Source: Vitrella brassicaformis CCMP3155
Taxonomy: Eukaryota > Protista > Chromerida
NCBI GenBank assembly: GCA_001179505.1
Contig: CDMY01000844.1
Span: 1-15,827, forward strand
Direction: 5' to 3'
DNA length: 15,827 nucleotides
In this document: in pieces, positions 1 through 13,976 of the stretch
How positions within the stretch are numbered: the first letter of the stretch is position 1
Layout: each line of letters begins with the position of its first letter
Translations under genes and position numbers: made by a program
Notes under the pieces: model-generated
Database searches by the model: none
What the model was told of the DNA's origin: nothing
The model's input: only the letters and a program-made list of their open reading frames with translations

Positions 1-584
1 CCCGCACCAGGTCCCCAGCGCCCTCCGCTCCTCGCCGTCACCCTCCTGCACACGTAGTACATGATACACACATCGATACAGACAGACGGACAGACAGACA
101 GACAGACAGACGTTCACAGTCTGTATGTGTTATGTGTAATGTGCTGTCCGCCCACCTTTGGGGTAAAGGCGTCATCACCTTCCTGTACTCAGACAAACAA
201 ACACCCACACACAGGCACATACATGGCTGGTCTGCGAGCGCTAAGTATGTGTGTGTGTGTGTCTGTGTGCTCCCGCACCCACCTCAAGATCGTCGTCATC
301 TTCGTCGCCACCACCTTCGGAGTCCTCAGGAGGGATCTCAGGCTCCTCGGGGACAGTCACCTCCTGCAAACACATGACACACACACACAAAGCAGCGACA
401 GATAGACAAGCGTGCACATGCATAGTGCAGAGAGACCACAGGTGGGTGGCCGTGAATTTCTTACGGTCGACGGATCAGTGACGGCCGTGGACTCCTGCAG
501 CTTGCGCAGGGAGGGTGGGTGCTTCATGTCAGCAGCAACACCGGCCACCAGGAGGGCACCAACAAGGCACAGAAACAGCTTCAT
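1..584 (-). CDS. Gene A: secreted prepropeptide-family member, 3' end runs off the window
   Basis: Exons 584-465 (MKLFLCLVGALLVAGVAADMKHPPSLRKLQESTAVTDPST), 363-283 (EVTVPEEPEIPPEDSEGGGDEDDDDLE), 182-156 (EGDDAFTPK) and 45-<1 (EGDGEERRALGTWCG...). All introns are GT-AG and phase 0. The N-terminus is hydrophobic and signal-peptide-like, and exon 1 is near-identical to gene C exon 1. Confidence 0.85.
78..111. repeat. (GACA)n intronic microsatellite
   Basis: Direct reading, in gene A intron 3. The same class recurs at ~1208-1229, ~1377-1401 and ~9020-9042. Confidence 0.9.
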
Positions 585-1029
585 CGTGGGAGAACAATCC
601 AGGGTTCGGAATGGACTGAACGCACAGATGTAGCACTGGAATGCCGACAGATGGTTGACGAATCAAGCAGGCTGCAAGCGGTCGGAGTCTGATGCAAAAC
701 AGAATGAATGCGAAGAGGCACAAGACAGTTCTCCCTATCCAGCCGGTCTCGGAACATTCCACTTCGCATTCCGGGAACGAACGAACACTCCGCGACTCAC
801 ACCGCGCCGTTCTCTTGGGGCGGGCTAGGGTCGAGGGCGTGCAACAACATATTATCGCGTTTCTGAGCTCACGTTCCCTCTTCTCGCCTGTCCCGTTCCA
901 AATGGGCAATGGGAAAGGGGACAGAGAGGGAGGGATTCCAGCTCCAGAATCGTCATTCCGCTCCAGATCTTCATTCCGCCGTCCGTCGTCAGGTGACTGT
1001 TGTCCTTTGTCGTTTCTCACTTGTTCGCG
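585..1029. promoter_or_regulatory. Putative bidirectional promoter region between genes A and B
   Basis: 445-bp gap between divergent ATGs. The B 5' flank shares tttctcacttgttc (1013-1026) and cttcat(t)ccgcc with the C flank. Promoter function is inferred from geometry only. Confidence 0.5.
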
Positions 1030-1651
1030 ATGAAGCTACTTCTGTGCCTTGCTGGCGCCCTCCTGATGGCCGGTGCTCTGTGCGCCCCAACACCCCTGCG
1101 CAAGCTGGCACCTCAAGAGTCCACGGCCGTCACTGATCCGTCGACCGTAAGCAATGCATGACCACCCACCTGTGCTGCCCTCTATGCCACTGTGCATGTT
1201 CATTTTTCTGTCTGTCTGTCTGTCTGTCTTTCTGTCCTCTCATGGTGTATGCAGAATGTAACCGTTCCCGAGGAGCCTGATCCAGAGATCACCCCTGGCG
1301 ACGAGGTGGGCAAGAGAACACTCACCCATACAGGCAGCGACCCACCCACCCACCCAGGCATAGACCCCTGCACGCCTGTCTGTCTGTCTGTCTGTCTGTC
1401 TGCATGTGTGTGTGCAGGAGGGTGGCGATGATATTGAACTGAGGGCTACGCACTGGCGCCACTATTGCTCTGAGTGCACCTGTGGGCATGGGTACCCTGG
1501 ATGGGCTGAGAACCATGGCAATCACGACCACACCCACGGTTGCCCGTGTAAGTGCCATGGCATGATGCACTACGGTTGTGAGTGTACGTGTGACCATCAC
1601 CATCACCACCATGGCCACGAGCACTACCATGACTGCGAGTGTATGTGTTAG
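1030..1651 (+). CDS. Gene B: secreted His/Cys-rich, metallothionein-like prepropeptide (133 aa)
   Basis: Exons 1030-1146 (MKLLLCLAGALLMAGALCAPTPLRKLAPQESTAVTDPST), 1255-1305 (NVTVPEEPDPEITPGDE) and 1418-1651 (EGGDDIELRATHWRHYCSECTC...HHHHHHGHEHYHDCECMC*). Introns are GT-AG and phase 0. The last 68 aa contain 18 His and 12 Cys in four Cys triads. Confidence 0.85.
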
Positions 1652-2440
1652 CACCAGTGTGTTTTGGACGTGAGTCAGTGGGTGGTGGCTGGGCTGTGGG
1701 TGGGGGAGAGAGAGATGAGCCACACGACGTCTGAGATGGCTTGCGTCCCTACTGATCTGATCTGCGGTGGTGTTTCATCAATATAAGTAGCTCGTCTCTG
1801 TTTGCCTGTGGCTCGTCTTGTTGTCGTCTGTGTGTCCGTGACACTCACACATACATATACAGTGCCATGAGCACGCGAGTCAAACAGGCTCAAGGGGAGG
1901 AGGGATCTCGAGATCCCCGCCCCATCAGCGTGTGTCTGGCTCTTGCTGGCTGGGCAGAGAGTATGTCTGTATGTCTGTTTTATGTCACGCATTCCTCGCT
2001 TGAGTAGCTGCCCCGCTCCCCCTCCCGCTCCATCCAGCTGCGGCCTGGTGGCTGGTTGGCTTTTTTCTTCAATGCACATAATTTATTGAATGTGTCGTGA
2101 GCGTCTTTGTGTGTTCGTCTTCCTGACGAGCTCTGAGCTGATGTGAAGTGTGTGGCTGGCTGACTGGCTGTGTGCATACTTGCATGTATTTCATGTGGGA
2201 GGGGGTGGGGCAGCCACAGACAGGGGAGGGGAGTGAGGGGGAGATGAGTCGTCACAATCCATCTTGGGGGTTACACACATGGGATGGGATGGACACATGG
2301 GATGGGATGGACAGAGACACCGACGAGACACGCAAATATATCAAGTGAATGATCCAATGACGCCCGGGTGAACCACTCATAAGCGAGATCTGCAGAACGA
2401 CTGTTGACCCCCTCCCTCATATTTTTCACTACTTCTGCAG

Positions 2441-2837
2441 ATTCAACAGTCAATTGAGGGACTGTTGACACTTGATGGAGCTGCTTCAGTGCCTTCATTT
2501 AGACAGCGTTCGGTAAACCACGGCAGGTGGACACACATGCAGACACATCTCATGTGTGGGTGTTTGAATGTCTGTGTGCAGTTTGACGATGGTGGCTAGG
2601 GCGACACCATCGAAGAGAACGAGATCGACGTTTTGGGTTTATGTCTCGACATTAAGAACCCAAGAGCCCAAAAGGCTTTAATGGCGAGGGGCGTCGGCTC
2701 TCAAGGCTGTTGGGAGGGAGGCTGTCGGCTGCACAGGTTGCTAGGTTGTTGAAGGTAAACCATCTGGAGGGGCACGGCATCCGAAGGCGGTCGTCACGAC
2801 TGATTGAATGCAGTCCAGAGAGTGGTCTCTGCTCTCA

Positions 2838-2874
<37 letters not shown>

Positions 2875-2960
2875 CTTTTGATTCGTTCGTCCGTTCTGAC
2901 AGGTGTCGAGTGGTGGGCCGCAGCAGCTGGCACATAGACGAGCCACATCACATGAAGGCT
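2441..2960 (+). pseudogene. Possible decayed spliced gene remnant, family not recognised
   Basis: Acceptor ...ttctgcag| precedes exon 2441-2512 (IQQSIEGLLTLDGAASVPSFRQRS), followed by a gtaaac donor. Acceptor gtgtgcag| at 2581 precedes FDDGG*GDTIEENEIDVLGLCLDIKNPRAQKALMARG with an in-frame TAG at 2597-2599. Intron-style CT/GT tracts follow. No start codon was resolved. Confidence 0.3.
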
Positions 2961-3839
2961 GATGACACAAGACCCCTTTTCTGACCCTTGTATGTGTGTG
3001 TGGGTGTGTGTGCATGTGTGTACGTGTGTGTGTGTGTCTGCTGTCCGCTGTGTCTGTCGTTTTGCCTCTGCCTGCCTGCCTGCCTGCATTTGAGTCAAGG
3101 CGTACATGTGTCCTCTTGACGTTGCTGCCTGACCTCCTTCCTGTTCTTGGCCAACTGTCCGTGTTCGTGTCTGTTAATATAGCAAGAGACTGTCCGCCGA
3201 TGTGTGTATGTGCACGTATGCGCGCTCGTCCCCAAATGACGGAAAGGGCGGGTGGGTACGATTGGATGACACGGATGAGACGGATGAGACCCACCCCACG
3301 AGGGACGCATGTATTACATGCAGACATAAAGGGAGTCAACAATGCAGCATGCAGTCAACCAAAATGTGCCCTTCCACACATAGTCTCCCCTTTCCGTCGT
3401 TGCCCCCATCACAGTTTGATCGATTTGATGACGTATGTACTGCATACAACTGACACCAACTGGCTGCGGCCTGCCTGAGACGCTCTCTCTCCCTCTCTGG
3501 CCACTGCTCCACACACCACTTCCCAAGGACAGCTCGTGCAGAGCACATCAGATTAGTCAGGCGAAATGATTAGCACAGCACTCAGAAAAAGGAAAACGAG
3601 AACACAGATTCTGAGACCTTCTACGAATTGATTGACCGAAGAGGAAAGAGCAGTCAGCCAGATGGCAGGTGGCGGATAGCAAGGGAAAACGAGCAGGAGA
3701 AGAGGAACAGAACAGTGTGTGCTCACTTGGGTCCTTCATCTGTACCACAAGCGCAGACAGCGATACCAACACTCACACCGATGTGTGTGTCCAGCAAGTG
3801 CGTTGACGCACCAGTGGATGATTTCAATAGTCGCCAGCG

Positions 3840-4591
3840 TCAATAGTCGCCATAGCGCCGATCGGATTCCCACGGGTAGGGGAGGTGGTTGTCGTGGTTC
3901 TGGTTCCTTCGGTGCCTGCGGCGCCACCACCAGGCTGCTCTTCGGTGGCGCCCCCACCACTGCAGAGCTCTCAGCTCAGCCCTGCCATCACCTTCCTGGT
4001 CGTCCTCGCCTTGTGCGGCAGTGAGGTCTTCATCGGGTTTCTCGGTCTCATCTTCCAGCAAGAGACACTCATGGAGATTTTCACACAGACAGTCGCTGTT
4101 CATGTATGATATTTTGCTGGCCAACCTCGATGTCGGCAGGGGGGTAGCCGCACCAGCCCGCCTCCCCGCCGCACCGACCACCCTCCTGCACTCAGCCAAA
4201 CCAATAACGGCACACGGGCATATGGCTGCTCTGCGTGTGCTGCATGTGTGTGTTTGTGTGCGGAAGCTCCGTTGCCCACCCCATCTGTTATATCGTCGCG
4301 AGAGTCGTCGTCATCGTCAACTGCGTAGTTGCCAGGAGTGATCTCAGACTCCTCGGGGACAGTCACCTCCTGCACACACACATCACACACACAGGGGAGC
4401 GACCGATAGACACGCGCATGAACATCCATCGAGGCATACAGAGCAGCACAGGTTGGCCACGCGTTCCTTACCGTCGACGGATCAGTGACGGCCGTGGACT
4501 CCTGCAGCTTGCGCAGGCAGGGTGGGTGCTTCATGTCAGCAGCAACACCGGCCACCAGGAGGGCGCCGACAAGGCACAGAAACAGCTTCAT
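3840..4591 (-). CDS. Gene C: secreted prepropeptide with acidic spacer and Trp/Arg-rich cationic C-terminus (~161 aa); last splice acceptor atypical
   Basis: Exons 4591-4472, 4369-4280 (EVTVPEESEITPGNYAVDDDDDSRDDITDG), 4185-4126 (EGGRCGGEAGWCGYPPADIE) and ~4055-3840 (EDETEKPDEDLTAAQGEDDQEGDGRAELRALQWWGRHRRAAWWWRRRHRRNQNHDNHLPYPWESDRRYGDY*). The expected last acceptor reads ttgcTG rather than ttgcAG. In-frame alternative AG acceptors would start the exon at 4067 or 4046. Confidence 0.75.
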
Positions 4592-5000
4592 CGCGGGAGA
4601 ACAAGTGAGAAAATGAAAAGGAAAAACAATCACTGGCAGAAGGAAGGCGGATGAAGAATGTCGAAGGTGCGGATCTGCCCTCCGACACTCTTCCCATTTC
4701 GATCAGAGGTGTTAGGACGAATTCGGTTTTACGCATGCGGTGTCCTGGGACTGGGAACGCGAAGACAGGTGGGACAGATCTCTTCCTCCTCGACAGATCC
4801 CAACTTGAGATTTCACATTGCGCCTTCCTTCCTTTTCAGTTTGTTTTTCCCTTGTCGTATTCTCGCTCGTTCTCCCGATGAAGCTGCTTCTGTGCCTGGT
4901 TGGTGCCCTCCTGGTGGCCGGTGCTCTGTGCGCTGATGACGTGAAGCACCCATCCTCCCTGCGCAAGCTGAGTCCTCAGGGCGTCGCTGATCCGTCGACG
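4472..5000. repeat. Imperfect inverted repeat: exon 1 plus ~90 bp of 5' flank of gene C versus gene D
   Basis: The reverse complement of the C flank (cagatcc...ccgccttccttc...gttctcccgcgATG) aligns by eye with the D flank (cagatcc...gcgccttccttc...gttctcccgATG), and the two exon 1 sequences are paralogous. The spacer is about 100 bp. Confidence 0.7.
4592..4877. promoter_or_regulatory. Putative bidirectional promoter region between gene C and ZIP gene D
   Basis: 286-bp gap between divergent ATGs at 4591 (-) and 4878 (+). Inferred from geometry only. Confidence 0.55.
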
Positions 5001-5084
5001 GTAAGGACATGCAACATGGCCACAACTTGCTCGTGCTGCCTCTCCGTCACCGTGGGTTTGCATGCGTCTGTTTATCCGTCGATC

Positions 5085-5120
<36 letters not shown>

Positions 5121-6045
5121 CAGCAGGGTGATGAAGCTCCTGTGAGGGCGCTGCATGGACCTCACCGCGACCACGATGATGACCATCGCCACGACCATGA
5201 CTACGCCGACCGTGTGGCCCTCGGTTTCGTCATGACCACCATCGCCGGTAGGTACGCACGTGTGCTGCCTGACACGACGCGCACGTTGTCGTGATGTCTT
5301 GCCGGTCACTCATTCGGTGTTGATGTGATGTTTCGCGGGTGCAGGCTTGTCCACTGCTGTGGGCAGCGCCTTGTCCTTCTGCCTTCCCAGGAACAATGGC
5401 AAGGCACGTGTGCTGCAGACACACGTGCCTGGATGGATCCGCACACACTGACTGCCACATCACATCATGTTATATCGGTGTCTGTCCGCAGGTGTTTGCG
5501 GTGTTGTGCATGTCTCTGTCTGCGGGCGTCATGCTCTACGTGTCCTTCGGGGAGATCCTCAGCAAAAGCATCGTACGATCGATCGATCGACATGCGCGCA
5601 CACGCACTCCCAAGAGCGCGTACGTGTTTGTACATATATGCACATTTTGTATGTGTTGTGTGCAATGAATAGGACGAGTTTCGTGAGGCGATTAGCGACG
5701 GGGGGGAGGCGTACGCCTACGCTACGCTGTGCTTTTTCGGCGGTATGCTCACACGCATACATACCCACATGTGGCCACACAAACATACACCTGCACACAA
5801 AACAAACAATATACCTATGTGTGCATCATTCGACAGGTATCCTTGCGGCGATGCTGCTCGACTACGCCCTGGATTCCATGTTCAAAGTACTTGAAGCCAA
5901 CACTCACTCCATGGACACACAATGACATGCACAAACATGCGAATGATGCCGTGACTCGCGTGTGCAGTGGATCCAGACCGAGCCCGAGGCGCCCAGCAAC
6001 AGCAGCCCAGTGCCCGACGAAGTCCCCAAGGTATGAAGTGCATGC

Positions 6046-6076
<31 letters not shown>

Positions 6077-7806
6077 GGAGAGACACGATATTACGTGCCA
6101 CACATGACGATTGACTGACGTGCACGTACACATGTATGTGGCTGCAGAGTGGGGCAGACCGGGAGCAGCAGCAAGAGGAACGTAACAACACTGAGCAAGG
6201 TGCGCACACCACACAAACGGAAACGCATGGATGGATGGATGGATGGAATGGCAGGCGGTTGCGATGGAGGCGCTCTCGCTCGAGAAAAGGTACTGTGTGG
6301 AGAGCAAGTAGCTGTGGTGAGTGCACACACCACAGACGACACGCACACACGCACATGCAAATATATACACATGATATATATATGCATGTGTACCTACCTA
6401 CCTACCTACCTCTGTACGTCATGTCCGCGCACACATGTCATGTGTCAATCAATAAAGGTGATTGAGCAGTCTCTCTGCGGCGATGATAAGATGGCCAGGA
6501 CGCCGTCAACCGACTGTGAAGGTACGTCATTCACGCCACGCCTCCGTTCACACGTATGTATGAGTGTGAACAGCACATCTCTCTCACACTACATATGGGT
6601 ATGTGTGTGTGTGTGTGTGTGTGTGTTCCTGTGCAGGTGCTGGGAGTCCGGACCAGCGCAGCACATCAGAAGACAACCCGAAGAAGGTCCATCTATCCGT
6701 CCGTCCGTCCGTAAATGCATACATGTGTGCGCGTCGTGTGTATTAAGGGTTCGTTGGAGAAGCAGTGGGCTGACAGAGCGGCCCTCAAAAGCCTCGGGAT
6801 ATTCAGGTACGTACGTACGTACGTACGTACGTACGTGGAACAAAGCGCCGACACATACACATATACACACATGTATGTCTTCTATGACTGCAATAAATAT
6901 CGGTTCGGTTTATCACCGATCGACCAGCGGTCTTGCACTAGCTATGCACAACTTCCCCGAAGGTTTGGCCACGTTCGCTGCGACACTGGCGGATCCAACC
7001 TTCGGACTCGGTACGTGCCACACACCCGCATCGCACACACGCCATGGATACACATTCATTGGTGTGTGCACACAGGGGTGGCCGTTGCCATCGCCATCCA
7101 CAATATTCCCGAGGGAATCGCCGTCAGGTATCCACACGCACAGATGGGTGCACGCACGGGCACAATGCCGCCGCTGTGCTTGTGCACATTCGATCAGTGT
7201 GCCGATCTTCTACGCAACGGGCAGCAAGTGGAAGGCATTCGGTACGTCCATACACATGCATACACGCACACATACACATGCATGTGTGTGCCTTTGTGTG
7301 GGTGTGTGTACAGGCTGGTCGCTGCTCAGTGGCCTAGCCGAGCCAGTCGGGGCTCTACTAGGTCAGTGAGTCAAGTGATTGCATCCATGCATTTGTCTGT
7401 CCACGCGCTCTCAAATGCATGTCTGCATGAATGCCACTCAGGCTACCTGGTGCTGATTCACGTGATGTCGCCCACTGCATTCGCCATTCTGTTCGGTACG
7501 TCTGTCTGCACGTGTGTGTGCACCCACCCGTGAGCACGCATTGTTGTCTTGTTGTGTCTCGATGGGGCTTGGCTTGCAGGTTTGGTGGGAGGTATCATGA
7601 TTCATATATGCATCAAGAAGCTGATACCCACCGCACTCAAATACGACCCACAAGTACGCCATCCACACACAGGTCCATCCTTCCTTCCGTCCAAACACAT
7701 GTACACGGTTGTGTATGTGTGTGTTTAGGATCGTGTGACGTCAAACACGTGTCTGGTGGGGATGGCCGTCATGGCCCTCTCGCTGGTGCTTTTCCAAGTC
7801 GTCTGA
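4878..7806 (+). CDS. zupT: Gene D: ZIP-family divalent metal (Zn/Fe/Mn) transporter, ZupT/GufA-like, ~420 aa, 19 exons, with family signal/pro-leader and His/Asp-rich N-terminal segment
   Basis: Exons 4878-5000, 5124-5247, 5345-5403, 5492-5572, 5673-5742, 5837-5886, 5968-6030, 6148-6199, 6255-6289, 6458-6521, 6637-6686, 6748-6806, 6928-7010, 7076-7127, 7198-7241, 7314-7361, 7442-7495, 7580-7653 and 7729-7806 splice into one open frame of 1263 nt. Motifs include MSLSAGVMLYVSF, TM4 HNFPEG (6947-6964), TM5 HNIPEG (7099-7116), SVPIFYATGSKWKAF and SGLAEPVGALLG. One GC-AG intron starts at 5404. Confidence 0.95.
5087..5116. repeat. (TG)n intronic microsatellite upstream of a splice acceptor
   Basis: Direct reading, ZIP intron 1. 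Similar TG tracts precede many acceptors in the window. Confidence 0.9.
6807..6834. repeat. (GTAC)7 self-complementary microsatellite starting exactly at a splice donor
   Basis: attcag|gtacgtacgtacgtacgtacgtacgtacgt in ZIP intron 12. Confidence 0.95.
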
Positions 7807-8919: not shown

Positions 8920-9226
8920 ACCTTCGAAGGAGTGCCAGACAGACAGGCAGAGACCCAGTGGCCAGCGTCCATGGACTGATGGACAGACAGACAGACAAGT
9001 GACGAACAGAGAGAGAGAAAGACAGACAGACAGACAGACAGACCGGTCAACCAACGGACGATCGATCGGGAATTCGTTACATGAGTCGCATACGTTCTGT
9101 ATTACGTCAATGTCTCTTACATTAATTCGAGCGCTGATCAGTGATTGATTGATCGATTGATTGATTGGCTTTCTTTCTTCTCTTGTCGCGTCGCATTGAG
9201 ACGAGTGAGTGAGTGAGTAAGTAGAA

Positions 9227-10959
9227 ATGGCAACTGGGCGGTCCGCCCGGCCCAGGCCACCCAGCAAAACTCCGCCACCATCAGCGGCACGCAATCGCTA
9301 TGCAGTCGGCACACAATCACTCACCACACAATCACCCGGCAACGCACACACATTGGTCACTCACGCCTGTACATGTGTTGTCTGATGTTTTTCTTTCGTT
9401 CAGTGATCCGCAATGTGCTCCGCACTGTGTTCGGGAGCATCGCCTACATCCGCGAATTGTTCCCCGAGGACTGCTTCGAGGAGAAGACCATCAGTGAGTC
9501 ACCGAGAGAGGCGACACATGTGTGTCTCTCTCCGTTTGTGTTGTGGCTGCGCGTTGTCTGTGCGTGTAGGTGAGCTGCCGTTGAAGATTTTGCGGCCCAA
9601 GGACGAGCACAGCGAGGCGGCGAAGCTGCACGCATGGCTCGACAAGAAGTGCCTCCGGTCAGCCAGGGATGCACTCTTGTGTGTGTGTCTTGTGCTGTGC
9701 TGTGTCGTGTGGACGGATGTATGGATGGATGGATGGATGTGTTGGTGCAGTATGTTGATCTTCGGCATCCATGACTCGTTGACGGACGCGCTGCTCGAGT
9801 CTCACCACTTCAAGGCACACAGACACACACAGAGAGAGACACTCACCACGCCACGCCCATCTCTCTCTCCATGTCTCTCTCTCTGTGTGTGTGAGTGTGT
9901 GTGTGCAGTTTGCCTACGACAACAGTGTGAGTGTGGACGTGGATCGCGACAACGGCGACCCACAGGCACAGCCGAGTGCGAGCGCCAGTGCCAGTGGAGT
10001 GTCCAAGGAGGAGGCCAAGAAACAGGCCACATCGATGCTGCTGAACCTCATCTTCCTCACAAGTAAGTCAGTCAACTCAGCCATTCGACACCCACACCAC
10101 ACACACTGACCTCCATCCCCCCTGTCTGTCTGTCTGTCTGTCTTTCTGTGTGTCTTTAGAGGAGCTCAGCCCGCTGCCAGGCAGGCCAAGCCCATCAACA
10201 CATACACAAGATGAGATAGATGCTCATCCTTACTGTCTTTCCCTCTGTGTGTGTGTGTGTGTGTGTGTGAGTGTGCAGATGACCGCTACCTGACCATGAA
10301 GATGATGTGAGCAGCTGTCGTCCGCCATCGGATCGGATAATTGAATCGAATTGCACACAGTGAGTCGTCCGCCACTATGTGAGCAGCGGCTTGAGGGAGT
10401 GCTTCTCAAGCCGTCCATCTGTGTGTGTGTGTGTGTGCAGGTGACGTGTGTGAGTTTGGCTGCGATGATCGAGCAGGACGAGGAAATCGCACAGTGCATA
10501 ATCGAGCAGTGAGTCACTGCCACACACACACACACACACACACAGATTGCCGTGTCATTCTCTGTCGTCAGGCTGCAGGAGAGCGGCTTGCTGAGTACAA
10601 GTGACCACATGGGCAAAGGCTTCATGGTGCCGCGACACACACACAACAACTCGCAGCAACATCAAGGTACAAAAGACACACACACAACACCTCTCGTCTA
10701 ATGCCATCTCATCTCTCTCGTCCGTCAGTGTCGCGCAAGCGTGGTCGTGCGGCGGTGGACGACGACAAGTCGTCGCACAGTGAGAACGGCGCCGACGACA
10801 AGAAGGGACGGCAGTCGATCAGAAGCCCCGGCCACGGACTCTCGTAACCACACCACACCACACACGGATGGATGGATGTCCCTGTATGTGTCTCTGTGTG
10901 TGTGTGTGTGTGTGTGTGTCAGGAAACGGCCGTGCCGCACACTGCCGATGCTCAAGTGA
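9227..10959 (+). pseudogene. HOP1: HOP1/ASY1/HORMAD-like meiotic axis gene (HORMA + winged helix), probably disrupted
   Basis: Exons ~9227-9304, 9404-9493 (MIRNVLRTVFGSIAYIRELFPEDCFEEKTI), 9570-9657, 9751-9814, 9909-10062, 10160-10180 (KELSPLP), 10279-10306 (DDRYLTMKM), 10441-10508, 10572-10666, 10729-10843 and 10923-10959. The HORMA identity is clear. Lesions: ATG 9227 is out of frame with the conserved frame, WL..KK lacks the usual E-GVFDAL, the YY..P..YxPPxF segment is absent, and exon 7 to 8 splicing yields ATG-TGA. Confidence 0.75.
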
Positions 10960-12018
10960 CAGACAGACAGGCAGACAGACAGACAGACTGACTGACAGGC
11001 AGACAGTCATGCGTGGCGTGTGTGTGGCGTGAGAGACAGTTTTGTTGATGCTATCGCAGCGCAGACACAGACGACAGACAGACAGACGAGTGGAGGATGA
11101 ACTCGGGACGCCTGCTCATTCAAACACGATGAGATTTGGTTCAAAATGTGTCCGAAACTGAAAGACGTCACCACACAGGACAAACAGACCGGAGACAGAC
11201 AGGCAGACAGACACAGAGAGACGGTTGGCTGAAATCGGTGTCTGTCTGTCTGCCAAATCGCCGAGAGTGTGTGTGTGTGTGAGTGTGTGTGTCTTGGGTC
11301 GGTTAGCTGACTGCATATTGTCGCGAGCGGTGCCTTTCGGCGAGCAGTTTGTTATTGTCTCTGGGGTGGTTGAAGGTCCACATCCTCAACGTGCGTCGTG
11401 CTCCACGTGCGCGCCGATTGGGTGTGCGACTAATTCGTTTTCTGCTTTCGTGCGGTGTAATTAAGTGCTTGTGCAGAATACTGACGCTGCATCGATCACC
11501 GGTGTTCAATGAGTGCTCTCATCCACGTGTGTGTCGCCCCCCGCGTGTGCGTCCACCCACAAAGACCCCATGCAGAAGTCCCTCAAATCCCCCCCCAGTT
11601 GCATCCATGCAGTGCACGTGCTCATTCCATCTCCGCATGGCCGTCACCCATCATTCGTCGAGTTTATAAGTGGTAGGGTTTGATAGTGGACAAACAAAGA
11701 TGAGATTGCTGTGTAAGTGGGGAATATTCATCTTGAATGCACTTGTCTTTTTTCACGTGGGTGTGTTGGTGTTGCGGTGTGGTCTCCATCCACACTGTCT
11801 GTGTGGCTGTCTCATTGCAGGGCTGGCCCAGGCATTACACGGAACCTGCGTTGACAAAGGCTTGCCCAGACGTAGGTCTAAAACGACAGCCTGCCTCTCG
11901 ACTGGCTTCTGCCGACTGGACAGATCAAAAAGAATACGACATAGATACCTCCCCTTCATCTATCATCTATCCGCTATCAACAAGAGAAAACAAGTACGGT
12001 CTTCTGAAGAACTTTCTC

Positions 12019-13976
12019 TCACTGTCGGTCCGCCAGCGGGCTCTGCAGCGAGCATGCATTGTCGACGGGGCACATGGACACGATGCTGAGACCCGCACAT
12101 CTCAAGGCTTCCCTGACATCGTCTATTGTCGCCTGCGATGGTTCAGGTGTCCGGGAGTATACCACACCGCCATCGTACCCGCACCAGGCGTCGTTGCATC
12201 CCATGTAGTACACAATGAAATACCTGATCGATCGATACACACATTGTTCACGCATGGAGGTGAATTTGTTCTTTCTTGCGGCCCACCTTTCAGGGTCGGC
12301 AGACAGAATGTACCAATCGTCGGATTGGTGTAGGTAGGTCGGGTCGTGGCTACGAAGCACTCCCGGAGAGCTCCTATGGGGAAAGAAGACCTGCTCCACA
12401 TGGCGGGTGAAAAATGGCTGTTTGTCACCACCCTGAATGAATCACACACGAAGGCAAAGACATACAGCACTGTGACCGACTGTTCTGTGTGTATGGTGCA
12501 GCGCTTCTTACATGGGGCACTGGTACCCGATAGGAGATATCGAATCTCACCCCATTGGCCGCCGTCCAAGCGCCATTCTTCCATCTCATTATCGGATGAG
12601 GAGCGCCATCATCCGAACGGACCGCCTCTGAAGTCTTGCCCTGACACACACACACACCACACACACACGTGTGTGGCACACCGGATGTGTAAGCAAGGGA
12701 TGTCGGCACATCGTAACACTGCATCCCCTATCTAATGAGGGCGATCCAGCTGACTCAGCGCCGATAAGCTAAAACCATCAAGGCAAGACGCCACGGATGG
12801 TCTCGGCAATTCGTGTCAGCACTGAGGTGAGTCGGTCAGGCACTCACAGCTCGACCAACAAGGAAGCAGTGCTCTCCCTGTCTACACGTTTGTCTGTCCT
12901 GTCTCTCTGTACTCACAGCTGGATATGTACGGTACGTAGGTATAGATGTATAAATGTCTTACCGGTGCGCTTTTGACGACTGAAGCAGTGTGGTGCTGAC
13001 AAGGGAAGCAGTCAAACACGGGGTTCAATCCATAGACAACCCACCACTCTCCCTGACAACCAGCAGAAAACCATGAAAGAAGAACTTCTTCCTCCCTTGT
13101 TCCTTCCGTCGTCCCACCTGCAGAGCGGCAGGCTCCAGTGCGGCGACGACAGGAATCCTCCTGTCGACCTCAGAAGCGCCAGGCAGCTGCCTGGCCACCT
13201 GCTCGCTCTTGCCCTGGTCATCCCGGACGCGCCCCTCCGCGGCATGTCTGTCGATCCTCTGAGGGATGACCTGGTGCTCGCTTATCGCGCATATGTGGAA
13301 CTCCTTTAGCACGTCCTCTTCGTACAAGTCGCCACATCTCATCTGGCACGCGATGTCGTCCATCCCACACTTCATGAGGCACACAAACTCGTGAAGACCC
13401 CGCCGGTCACTCATCGCCCGAAGCAAAGGACCACCGCATTTAGTCAGCAGGCCTGAATAACACAAGGCATAACAGCAATTCGTATGTGCAACAGCATCCG
13501 GATGTGCTGATACCATAGTAGTCGACGGAGCTCCTTGTCGACAGTGAGAAGACGCTCTGGCGTTTTCTTATCAGCGTATCATCCGGCGCCATGGCGCTTC
13601 TGCTGAGCCCATCCATCATAGCCTCTCTCTGCGCCGCATCGTAAGGTCTGCCGATCACATACAAAGACACCACGATCCCCAGCACAGCTACCCCAGCAAG
13701 AAGTCGCCTCCACAAGAGCGGAATGGGGCCCTCCCTTCTTCTTTGCCCTCCTTCTCCAGCACCCTTTTGCTTCCTTGGAGGCTTGGAAAGCCCGCGCTGG
13801 TGGTCACCATGACGCTGATCGGCAGATTGATCCAAGGGAGCATGAAGGGAAGCCCGGTCCTCTGTTCTTCTGGCTGAGTGGCGGACGGAAGGTCGGGGTG
13901 CTGCGAGAGGCTTGATGAACATCGGAGGACGGAAGGTGGCGGACGCAGCAAAGATGCCGCCTCGGACGAGTGTCAT
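12019..13976 (-). CDS. VDL: Violaxanthin de-epoxidase-family protein (VDE/VDL-like; Cys-rich domain + lipocalin domain, no Glu-rich tail), ~455 aa, 6 exons
   Basis: Exons 13976-13514, 13452-13118, 13052-12963, 12640-12512, 12432-12287 and 12223-12019 splice in frame (1368 nt). Motifs: CQMRCGDLYE..VLKEFHICA, GEWWVVYGLNPVFDCFPCQHH, FFTRHVEQ, PGVLRSHDPTYLHQSDDWYILS, YFIVYYMGCNDAWCGYDGGVVYSR, VDNAC, all parallel to plant VDE. The start codon is uncertain, and extra micro-exons within 12962-12641 cannot be excluded. Confidence 0.9.

Follow-up and report, generated by a model that had tools for sequence, protein, structure and literature searches.

We analysed the whole of contig CDMY01000844.1 (15,827 bp, referred to below as the window; assembly GCA_001179505.1) of Vitrella brassicaformis CCMP3155, a coral-associated alga and a free-living relative of the Apicomplexa. 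The DNA was eukaryotic and intron-rich, and many introns closed with (TG)n or (CTGT)n tracts ahead of the CAG acceptor. Four genes, A to D, were found to form two head-to-head pairs (A minus/B plus and C minus/D plus), and each of them starts with a homologous 5' untranslated region (5'UTR) and leader exon. D is by its sequence a complete ZIP metal transporter, with transport activity predicted. Contigs of sequencing runs (RNA runs X1 and X2, and DNA runs) were compared with window positions 1-2980. L- and P-numbers are our working labels for sequence pieces and proteins; P0130 is the annotated D protein CEM35148.1.

A common leader exon in four window genes

By repeat search and translation the leader exons were placed at 584..465 (A, minus), 1030-1146 (B, plus), 4591..4472 (C, minus) and 4878-5000 (D, plus), where they form two inverted pairs with arms 87-92% complementary. 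In translation, 24 of about 40 residues are invariant among the four leaders, which follow the pattern MKL(F/L)LCL.GALL.AG...LRKL...DPST. Each leader exon (120, 117, 120 and 123 nt in A, B, C and D; 39-41 codons) ends in DPST and is followed by a GTAAG donor, and since all four lengths are multiples of three, intron 1 is in phase 0. An earlier reading made from the letters of the DNA (hereafter the sequence-only reading) had proposed two divergent pairs in which one signal-peptide exon recurs and a phase-0 intron follows DPST, and both features were recovered in all four genes. The N-terminus of the leader is hydrophobic and resembles a signal peptide. Plastid targeting by a signal and transit peptide was considered and rejected, as the region after the signal peptide is acidic and not basic or hydroxylated.

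The likeness between the copies is not confined to the coding part. Among ten family members, including those outside the window that are described below, likeness was 53-98% over the 100 nt before the ATG, 63-98% over the leader exon and 52-100% over the initial 50 nt of the intron, with a baseline of about 45-50% for unrelated sequence in the same aligner. As the likeness extends into the 5'UTR and intron 1, the copies of this cassette are DNA-level duplicates, and the leader exon has been better kept than the flanking 5'UTR and intron. A k-mer search for a common promoter element returned only blocks of the cassette 5'UTR (TGTTCTCCC, directly ahead of the ATG, and TCTTCATTCC) and no candidate metal-response element.

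Behind the leader the genes have in common a junction of the type (E/Q)GD...R-A-(L/T), read as EGDGEERRAL in A, EGGDDIELRAT in B and QGDEAPVRAL in D. The sequence-only reading had assigned such a junction to all four genes. This holds for A, B and D; C carries the junction in the DNA (EGDGRAELRAL), but the single transcript observed does not read it in frame. R-x-L stood just before the cargo in 11 of the 12 junctions read.

Gene B (1030..1651, plus) consists of exons E1 (1030-1146), E2 (1255-1305; NVTVPEEPDPEITPGDE) and E3 (1418-1651). RNA contigs from X1 and X2 covered 857-1146, 1255-1304 and 1417-1755 with 0 mismatches and with a GT..AG joint at 1146/1255, so that in both runs the gene is spliced as the sequence-only reading had drawn it. 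The mRNA starts at about 857-863 and its 3'UTR reaches at least 1906. Its product of 133 amino acids is composed of the leader, NVTVPEEPDPEITPGDE, EGGDDIELRAT and a 66-residue His/Cys cargo followed by the stop. With 18 His (27%) and 12 Cys in 66 residues and a net charge of -6, behind a pro-part of net -9, this cargo is the extremely His/Cys-rich peptide that had been predicted. In the five B-type cargoes of the family all 12 Cys are invariant and arranged in four triads, mostly CxCxC, accompanied by several His runs; with five genes the B-type is the largest and best-expressed class of peptides. In the B 3' region, a stretch of about 30 nt (1877-1907) had a word depth of 4921 in a DNA-like run, compared to about 50 around it, and many differing loose ends on either side; it is a very high-copy short element.

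Gene A (1..584, minus) is cut by the contig end and is annotated as a partial protein of 91 amino acids (P0001). Its exons are E1 with the leader (465-584), E2 with an acidic spacer (283-363), E3 (156-182) and E4 (1-45), which encodes EGDGEERRAL followed by GTWCG. The joint of E1 to E2 (363|465) was seen in both X1 and X2, and a loose end at 151 matched window 11-40, which is the E3-to-E4 joint. The 5'UTR extends to at least 617, and transcript contig L003 was 91% alike to window 794..467. The pro-part of A has a net charge of -18. Genes A and B are separated by 445 bp (585..1029).

The mRNA of gene C (3297..4680, minus) has exons E1 (4471-4680, with the leader coding sequence at 4472-4591), E2 (4280-4369), E3 (4126-4185) and E4 (3297-4051), and transcript contig L002 was 100% identical to 4680..4471, 4369..4280, 4185..4126 and 4051..3297. 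With the acceptor at 4051 the open reading frame (ORF) ends at 3971 and gives a product of 116 amino acids (P0002). An alternative-frame last exon (3840..4067, minus) would encode an acidic spacer, EGDGRAELRAL and a Trp/Arg-rich peptide of 40 residues with a net charge of +6. This junction and cargo are in frame only with an acceptor at 4067, 16 nt upstream of 4051; no transcript using it was seen, L002 being the only C transcript. As that transcript leaves the conserved junction off frame, C is either decaying or alternatively spliced. The C/D intergenic region measures 286 bp (4592..4877), with the C mRNA starting at or beyond 4680 and the annotated D gene at 4735.

Gene D (plus) has 19 exons. 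Exon 1 (4878..5000) is the 41-codon leader with its phase-0 GTAAG donor. Exon 2 (5124..5247) encodes QGDEAPVRAL and a His/Asp-rich stretch of 20 residues, fused in the same exon to the ZIP start (DRVALGFVMTTIAG, the first transmembrane helix, TM1). Between the junction and TM1 the tail holds 6 His (30%) and 7 Asp/Glu (35%) in 20 residues. Exons 3-11 lie at 5345-5403, 5492-5572, 5673-5742, 5837-5886, 5968-6030, 6148-6199, 6255-6316, 6458-6521 and 6637-6686, and exons 12-19 at 6748-6806, 6928-7010 (HNFPEG), 7076-7127 (HNIPEG), 7198-7241, 7314-7361, 7442-7495, 7580-7653 and 7729-7806 (stop). A GC donor (GCACGT) is used by intron 3 (5404-5491), and the remaining 17 introns follow the GT-AG rule; the 3'UTR extends as far as about 8424. 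The model translates exactly to residues 25-453 of CEM35148.1 (429 amino acids). CEM35148.1 itself starts at the ATG at 4735, which adds 24 residues ahead of the leader Met. Because D', a second leader-bearing ZIP described below, and the transcript ORFs begin at the leader ATG, this N-terminal extension (window 4735-4877) is probably a prediction artefact.

The D-type protein P0009 matched the Pfam family Zip (PF02535) with 119.5 bits (cut-off 35.1) over profile positions 11-321 of 323, and a leaderless Vitrella paralog, P0011, with 129.8 bits. D, D' and P0011 all carry the metal-site motifs AMHNFPEG and AIHNIPEG, which align to the TM4 and TM5 sites of the BbZIP structures 5tsa and 8ght (E = 2e-9 for 5tsa with the D-type protein). 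The nearest named relatives of D outside Vitrella were bacterial ZupT. These results agree with the proposal that D is a full ZupT-like ZIP. Two transcript contigs, L005 and L006, join the end of a D-type leader (SPQGVADPST) straight to exon 2 (QGDEAPVRAL). As both contigs are mosaics of D, D' and the 5' end of the family gene P0129, this joint holds for the D/D' type and not for D alone. In L005 the first 268 nt are 97.8% alike to the P0129 locus, the middle matches D' and the 3' end is 100% identical to D. More generally, each of the Joint Genome Institute (JGI) transcript contigs L003, L005 and L006 combines parts of several paralogs, and the proteins P0003, P0009 and P0010 called on them are not to be treated as products of single genes.

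The family in Vitrella and the origin of the leader-bearing ZIP

A profile built from the four leaders was run against a set of 1.84 billion representative proteins, where it matched only Vitrella proteins, apart from a few low-complexity chance hits. D itself was not returned (its 50% cluster is represented by another protein) and was found through an intron-spanning open frame and a cluster look-up. P0129 came to light in word-indexed searches, in which ZIPs were the only long proteins that carried the leader. A degenerate leader pattern gave no match in metagenome contigs, in an index that does not hold the JGI transcriptome carrying L002 and L003. Thus the leader was found in Vitrella alone, on about 11 genes in three or four genomic clusters, two of them ZIPs, and not on the hundreds of unrelated proteins that the sequence-only reading had named as a result that would speak against it. 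As two members are missing from the annotation, the real family may be larger than this.

Homologous copies of the leader cassette were found in six genes beyond the four in the window. A2, a full-length paralog of A (L010 7328-8395), stands in tandem with P0129 on CDMY01000791, and the spliced mRNA of P0129 was seen as an RNA-run loose end. A2 is a polyprotein with three module exons, each opening with EGD/EAA....R(A/E)L followed by a His/Trp/Cys peptide, and two of them end in RMLS(A)E. P0134 lies on CDMY01000543, where the mRNA L013 matches the locus 100%. P0005 lies on CDMY01000400 (L004 10001-10782) and is annotated as 105 amino acids. An alternative last exon of P0005 reads VGDDDD...PLRML and a 49-residue Arg/Cys/Trp-rich peptide of net +17 in place of the annotated tail, and the annotated model probably uses wrong downstream exons. 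The second leader-ZIP, D' (CEM33597.1, 430 amino acids), is at the very start of CDMY01000791. Head-to-head with it, 270 bp apart, is an unannotated B-type gene, B' (L011 591-1085, minus), composed of the leader, EGGDSLELRAL and a B-type cargo with 12-13 Cys; its spliced mRNA was seen as a loose end in run X2. A Pfam search of the small proteins (A, B, C, P0003, P0129 and P0005) gave zero family matches at E up to 0.1. The sequences are best explained by a family peculiar to Vitrella whose members reuse a common 5' cassette and which has two paralogous clusters, one of them in the window.

The leaderless ZIP paralog (P0011/P0135) was present in three independent transcript assemblies, with a 5'UTR of about 320 nt and the start MMDDYGDRVV. 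It resembles D only from window 5199 onward, 75 nt into D exon 2 (D codon ~66), from which it follows that D is made of the leader exon, one family module and a ZIP. A short similarity between the ATGATG start of P0011 and GATGATGA in D exon 2 was set aside as too short to build on. In ZupT relatives from other organisms the protein begins at TM1, and no leader was found outside Vitrella, so that a gain in the D/D' lineage is the simpler history. Exon shuffling of the leader/module cassette onto a ZupT-like ZIP is the best reading of how the leader and the His/Asp tail arose. The exons of D and D' are 94% identical and the introns 68%. In the TM core the nonsynonymous rate (dN) was 0.009 and the synonymous rate (dS) 0.109, so both leader-ZIPs are maintained under purifying selection; the cytoplasmic loop evolves freely.

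We suggest that the family grew through tandem and inverted duplication and exon shuffling. The mobile unit would be a cassette of about 100 nt of 5'UTR, the leader exon (signal peptide and a stretch ending in LRKL..DPST) and the phase-0 intron. Behind it would come phase-0 module exons that encode acidic spacers, the (E/Q/V)GD....R-x-L junction and a short His/Cys/Trp-rich peptide. One shuffle would have put the leader exon and a junction/His/Asp module before a ZupT-like ZIP whose closest paralog begins at TM1. This would have given the ZIP a signal peptide that can be cleaved off, together with an outward-facing tail rich in His and Asp, before the gene was duplicated into D and D'. Cargo and 3'UTR of the B' region are homologous to those of B (76-94%), yet the region has the opposite orientation with respect to the ZIP, which indicates that the clusters were rearranged around the cassette.

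Tracts of (GACA)n/(CTGT)n at window 80-115, 1208-1232, 1377-1402, 8990-9045 and 10950-11010 recur inside introns and between genes, and (TG)n tracts stand directly ahead of many CAG acceptors; such tracts may favour rearrangements of the leader family. The window contig ends inside gene A, and the D' contig (L011) begins within 600 bp of B'. With both leader-ZIP contigs ending in or near a family gene, the assembly seems to break at the repeated family, and the clusters may extend further than the contigs. Two other annotated genes lie in the window, one for a protein of 220 amino acids with a HORMA domain (9110-10959, plus) and one for a protein of 335 amino acids with a Pfam VDE (violaxanthin de-epoxidase) domain (12019-13616, minus). 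B (1030-1651) and B' are transcribed yet missing from the public gene calls. Together with the probably wrong P0005 model and the doubtful extension of CEM35148.1, this corrects the public annotation.

Proposed function of the peptides and the ZIP

Metal acquisition of a zincophore-like kind is the function that we tentatively propose for the family, with somewhat less than even confidence. Peptide genes and ZIP would be transcribed outward from common intergenic regions of 270-445 bp and would be co-regulated. The precursors would enter the endoplasmic reticulum, the signal peptide would be cleaved off, and a cut at the R-x-L junction, or close to it, would remove the acidic pro-part. Outside the cell, the anionic peptides of the B- and A-type, rich in His and Cys, would then bind divalent metal and hand it over to the ZIP, which, with a homologous His-rich tail at its entrance, would import it. 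The arrangement would be zincophore-like and would have arisen independently of the fungal one. A metal function of this kind is plausible from the composition of the proteins and the layout of the genes.

The sequence-only reading had also taken the locus for a zincophore-like system, and this was borne out in part. Transcripts are present for A and B (in two RNA runs) and for C (in a transcript contig), the leader occurs on few genes, B' and D' stand head-to-head, and both ZIPs are under purifying selection. B itself lies 3.2 kb from D, and the head-to-head ZIP pairs are C/D (286 bp) and B'/D' (270 bp). Several points weigh against metal acquisition. The direct partner of D in the window is C and not B, and the sole C transcript does not read the conserved cargo in frame. 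The D exon 1-to-2 joint is seen for the D/D' type, its contigs being mosaics. As the two ZIP-peptide loci are paralogous, they count as one evolutionary event, and local capture of the leader accounts for both the shared leader and the adjacency without any functional link. No ZIP lies within 10 kb of five family members, among them A2, P0129, P0134 and P0005, and some cargoes are cationic and resemble antimicrobial peptides. The twelve Cys of the secreted B-type peptide may simply form disulfides. Structure prediction decided nothing: AlphaFold2 gave the B-type cargo a mean predicted local distance difference test score (pLDDT) of 41.8, and an Atlas model had a pLDDT of 0.45 with look-alikes at no more than 0.72. 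With confidence this low we claim no fold for the B-type cargo.

The cationic cargoes lead to the first alternative, a family of defence or allelopathy peptides, in which His/Trp/Arg/Cys-rich cargoes would hit bacteria or competitors and the ZIP would have received its leader by adjacency, gaining a signal peptide only. Antimicrobial peptides and toxins typically combine a conserved signal and acidic pro-part with a hypervariable mature peptide, and the pro-parts here are strongly acidic (net -9 to -18). Trp/Arg/Cys-rich cationic cargoes are encoded by the alternative frame of C (net +6) and by our reading of P0005 (net +17), and the sole matches of an Atlas feature search were clusters of toxin and defensin precursors, with scores at noise level. 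However, the C transcript does not put the cationic cargo in frame and the P0005 reading is without RNA support, and the B-type class, which is the largest and best-expressed, is anionic and His/Cys-rich. The ZIP acquired the His/Asp-rich module besides the signal exon, and both were kept in two copies. By composition, the anionic B-type cargo and the His/Asp tail of the ZIP would fit metal binding better than membrane attack. We therefore consider a defence function unlikely, while giving it real weight.

Less probable still is an extracellular role in metal buffering or detoxification, in which the peptides would bind Cu, Zn, Ni or Cd present in excess, or a structural one as His-metal cross-links in a cell or cyst wall; in either case the link to the ZIP would be evolutionary only. 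The cargo composition that suggests metal acquisition, with metallothionein-like CxCxC triads, would be the same under this alternative, and the evidence at hand does not separate uptake from buffering. What argues for metal acquisition is the transporter, since a ZupT-type ZIP brings metal into the cytosol, which suits acquisition over detoxification as the reason for keeping a shared promoter. That the family is an artefact of mis-assembled repeats, or of gene models that do not exist as mRNAs, is very improbable: a contig ends inside A, the paralogous one begins 600 bp from B' and L003, L005 and L006 are mosaic, but the window genes were recovered without differences in DNA-run contigs, RNA contigs showed canonical splice sites and 0 mismatches, and L002 and L013 match their loci 100%.

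Comparison with known systems

Metallothioneins are small cytosolic proteins rich in Cys, with CxC/CxxC clusters. The B-type cargo has CxCxC triads but no Pfam metallothionein match, carries a secretory leader and contains 27% His, and it is not assigned to this class. D resembles bacterial ZupT and BbZIP in its full-length Pfam Zip match and in HNFPEG and HNIPEG. Unlike ZupT, which has about 270 amino acids and starts at TM1, it is extended by a signal-peptide exon and a His/Asp module, and its TM3-TM4 loop is long and variable.

In the fungi Candida albicans (PRA1-ZRT1) and Aspergillus fumigatus (aspf2-zrfC), a secreted zinc binder and a ZIP are encoded on either side of a common intergenic region and are co-regulated (PMC3386192). 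The Vitrella loci are like these in having a His-rich secreted-type gene and a ZIP that face outward from a common region (B'/D' and C/D), and an importer with a His-rich outer N-terminus. They differ in that the peptides are unrelated to Pra1 and Aspf2 and have no Pfam match, and in that the ZIP is ZupT-like and not Zrt1-like. As the peptides have no homology to Pra1 or Aspf2, the Vitrella system can be an analogue only and not a member of the Pra1/Zrt1 type. Zinc binding and zinc regulation have been shown for the fungal systems, whereas the likeness in Vitrella rests on sequence and layout. In Vitrella the binder and the transporter also share a homologous leader and module, unlike in the fungal pairs, for which to our knowledge this has not been described. 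If the metal function is true, the coupling of a secreted binder to a ZIP importer would have arisen a second time and independently in eukaryotes, here in an algal relative of the Apicomplexa, and the homologous leader and His-rich module common to both partners would be its unusual trait.

Frog skin peptides and conotoxins combine a conserved pre-pro region with a hypervariable mature part. The same design is found in the secreted MgCRP-I and myticalin peptides of mussels (PMC4558851, PMC5577615). The Vitrella family resembles the mussel families in the DNA-level conservation of its signal/pro part, its acidic pro-parts, its unrelated cargoes and its tandem duplicates; its leader exon is 63-98% identical at the DNA level across unrelated cargo classes in multigene clusters. 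Different from the mussel peptides, one of the Vitrella cargoes is a polytopic transporter, and most of the cargoes are His-rich and anionic, not cationic.

Genes for exported Plasmodium proteins have the signal in a short exon 1, a phase-0 intron and RxLxE/Q/D, the Plasmodium export element (PEXEL), at the start of exon 2 (PMC1431722). Capture of this pre-sequence by existing genes, such as the FIKK kinases, through recombination has been proposed (PMC1431722). The Vitrella cassette likewise has a signal exon, a phase-0 intron and R-x-L near the start of the next exon. Unlike in PEXEL, the fifth position at the Vitrella junctions is not E/Q/D (RALGT, RALHG, RALQW, RELHP), and there is no host cell. 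PEXEL-fitting RKLQE occurs in the A and C leaders and RMLSE at the ends of A2 modules. Judged on these sequences, the likeness in architecture is real and the match in motif partial only. By analogy, the cassette could be a free-living chromerid counterpart of PEXEL and of the Toxoplasma export element (TEXEL). A protease like plasmepsin V or ASP5 would then cut at R-x-L, freeing several metal-binding peptides from precursors such as A2 and trimming the N-terminus of the ZIP; we rate this as speculative and improbable. If it were true, the capture by a ZIP with a surviving leaderless paralog would be a direct example of pre-sequence insertion by recombination.

Whatever its function, the locus provides a clean, RNA-supported case of a polytopic transporter that gained a signal peptide and a predicted outer metal-binding tail by exon shuffling from its neighbours. 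As the state before capture is kept in the paralog P0011, the pre-sequence capture model put forward for malaria exported proteins becomes directly testable.

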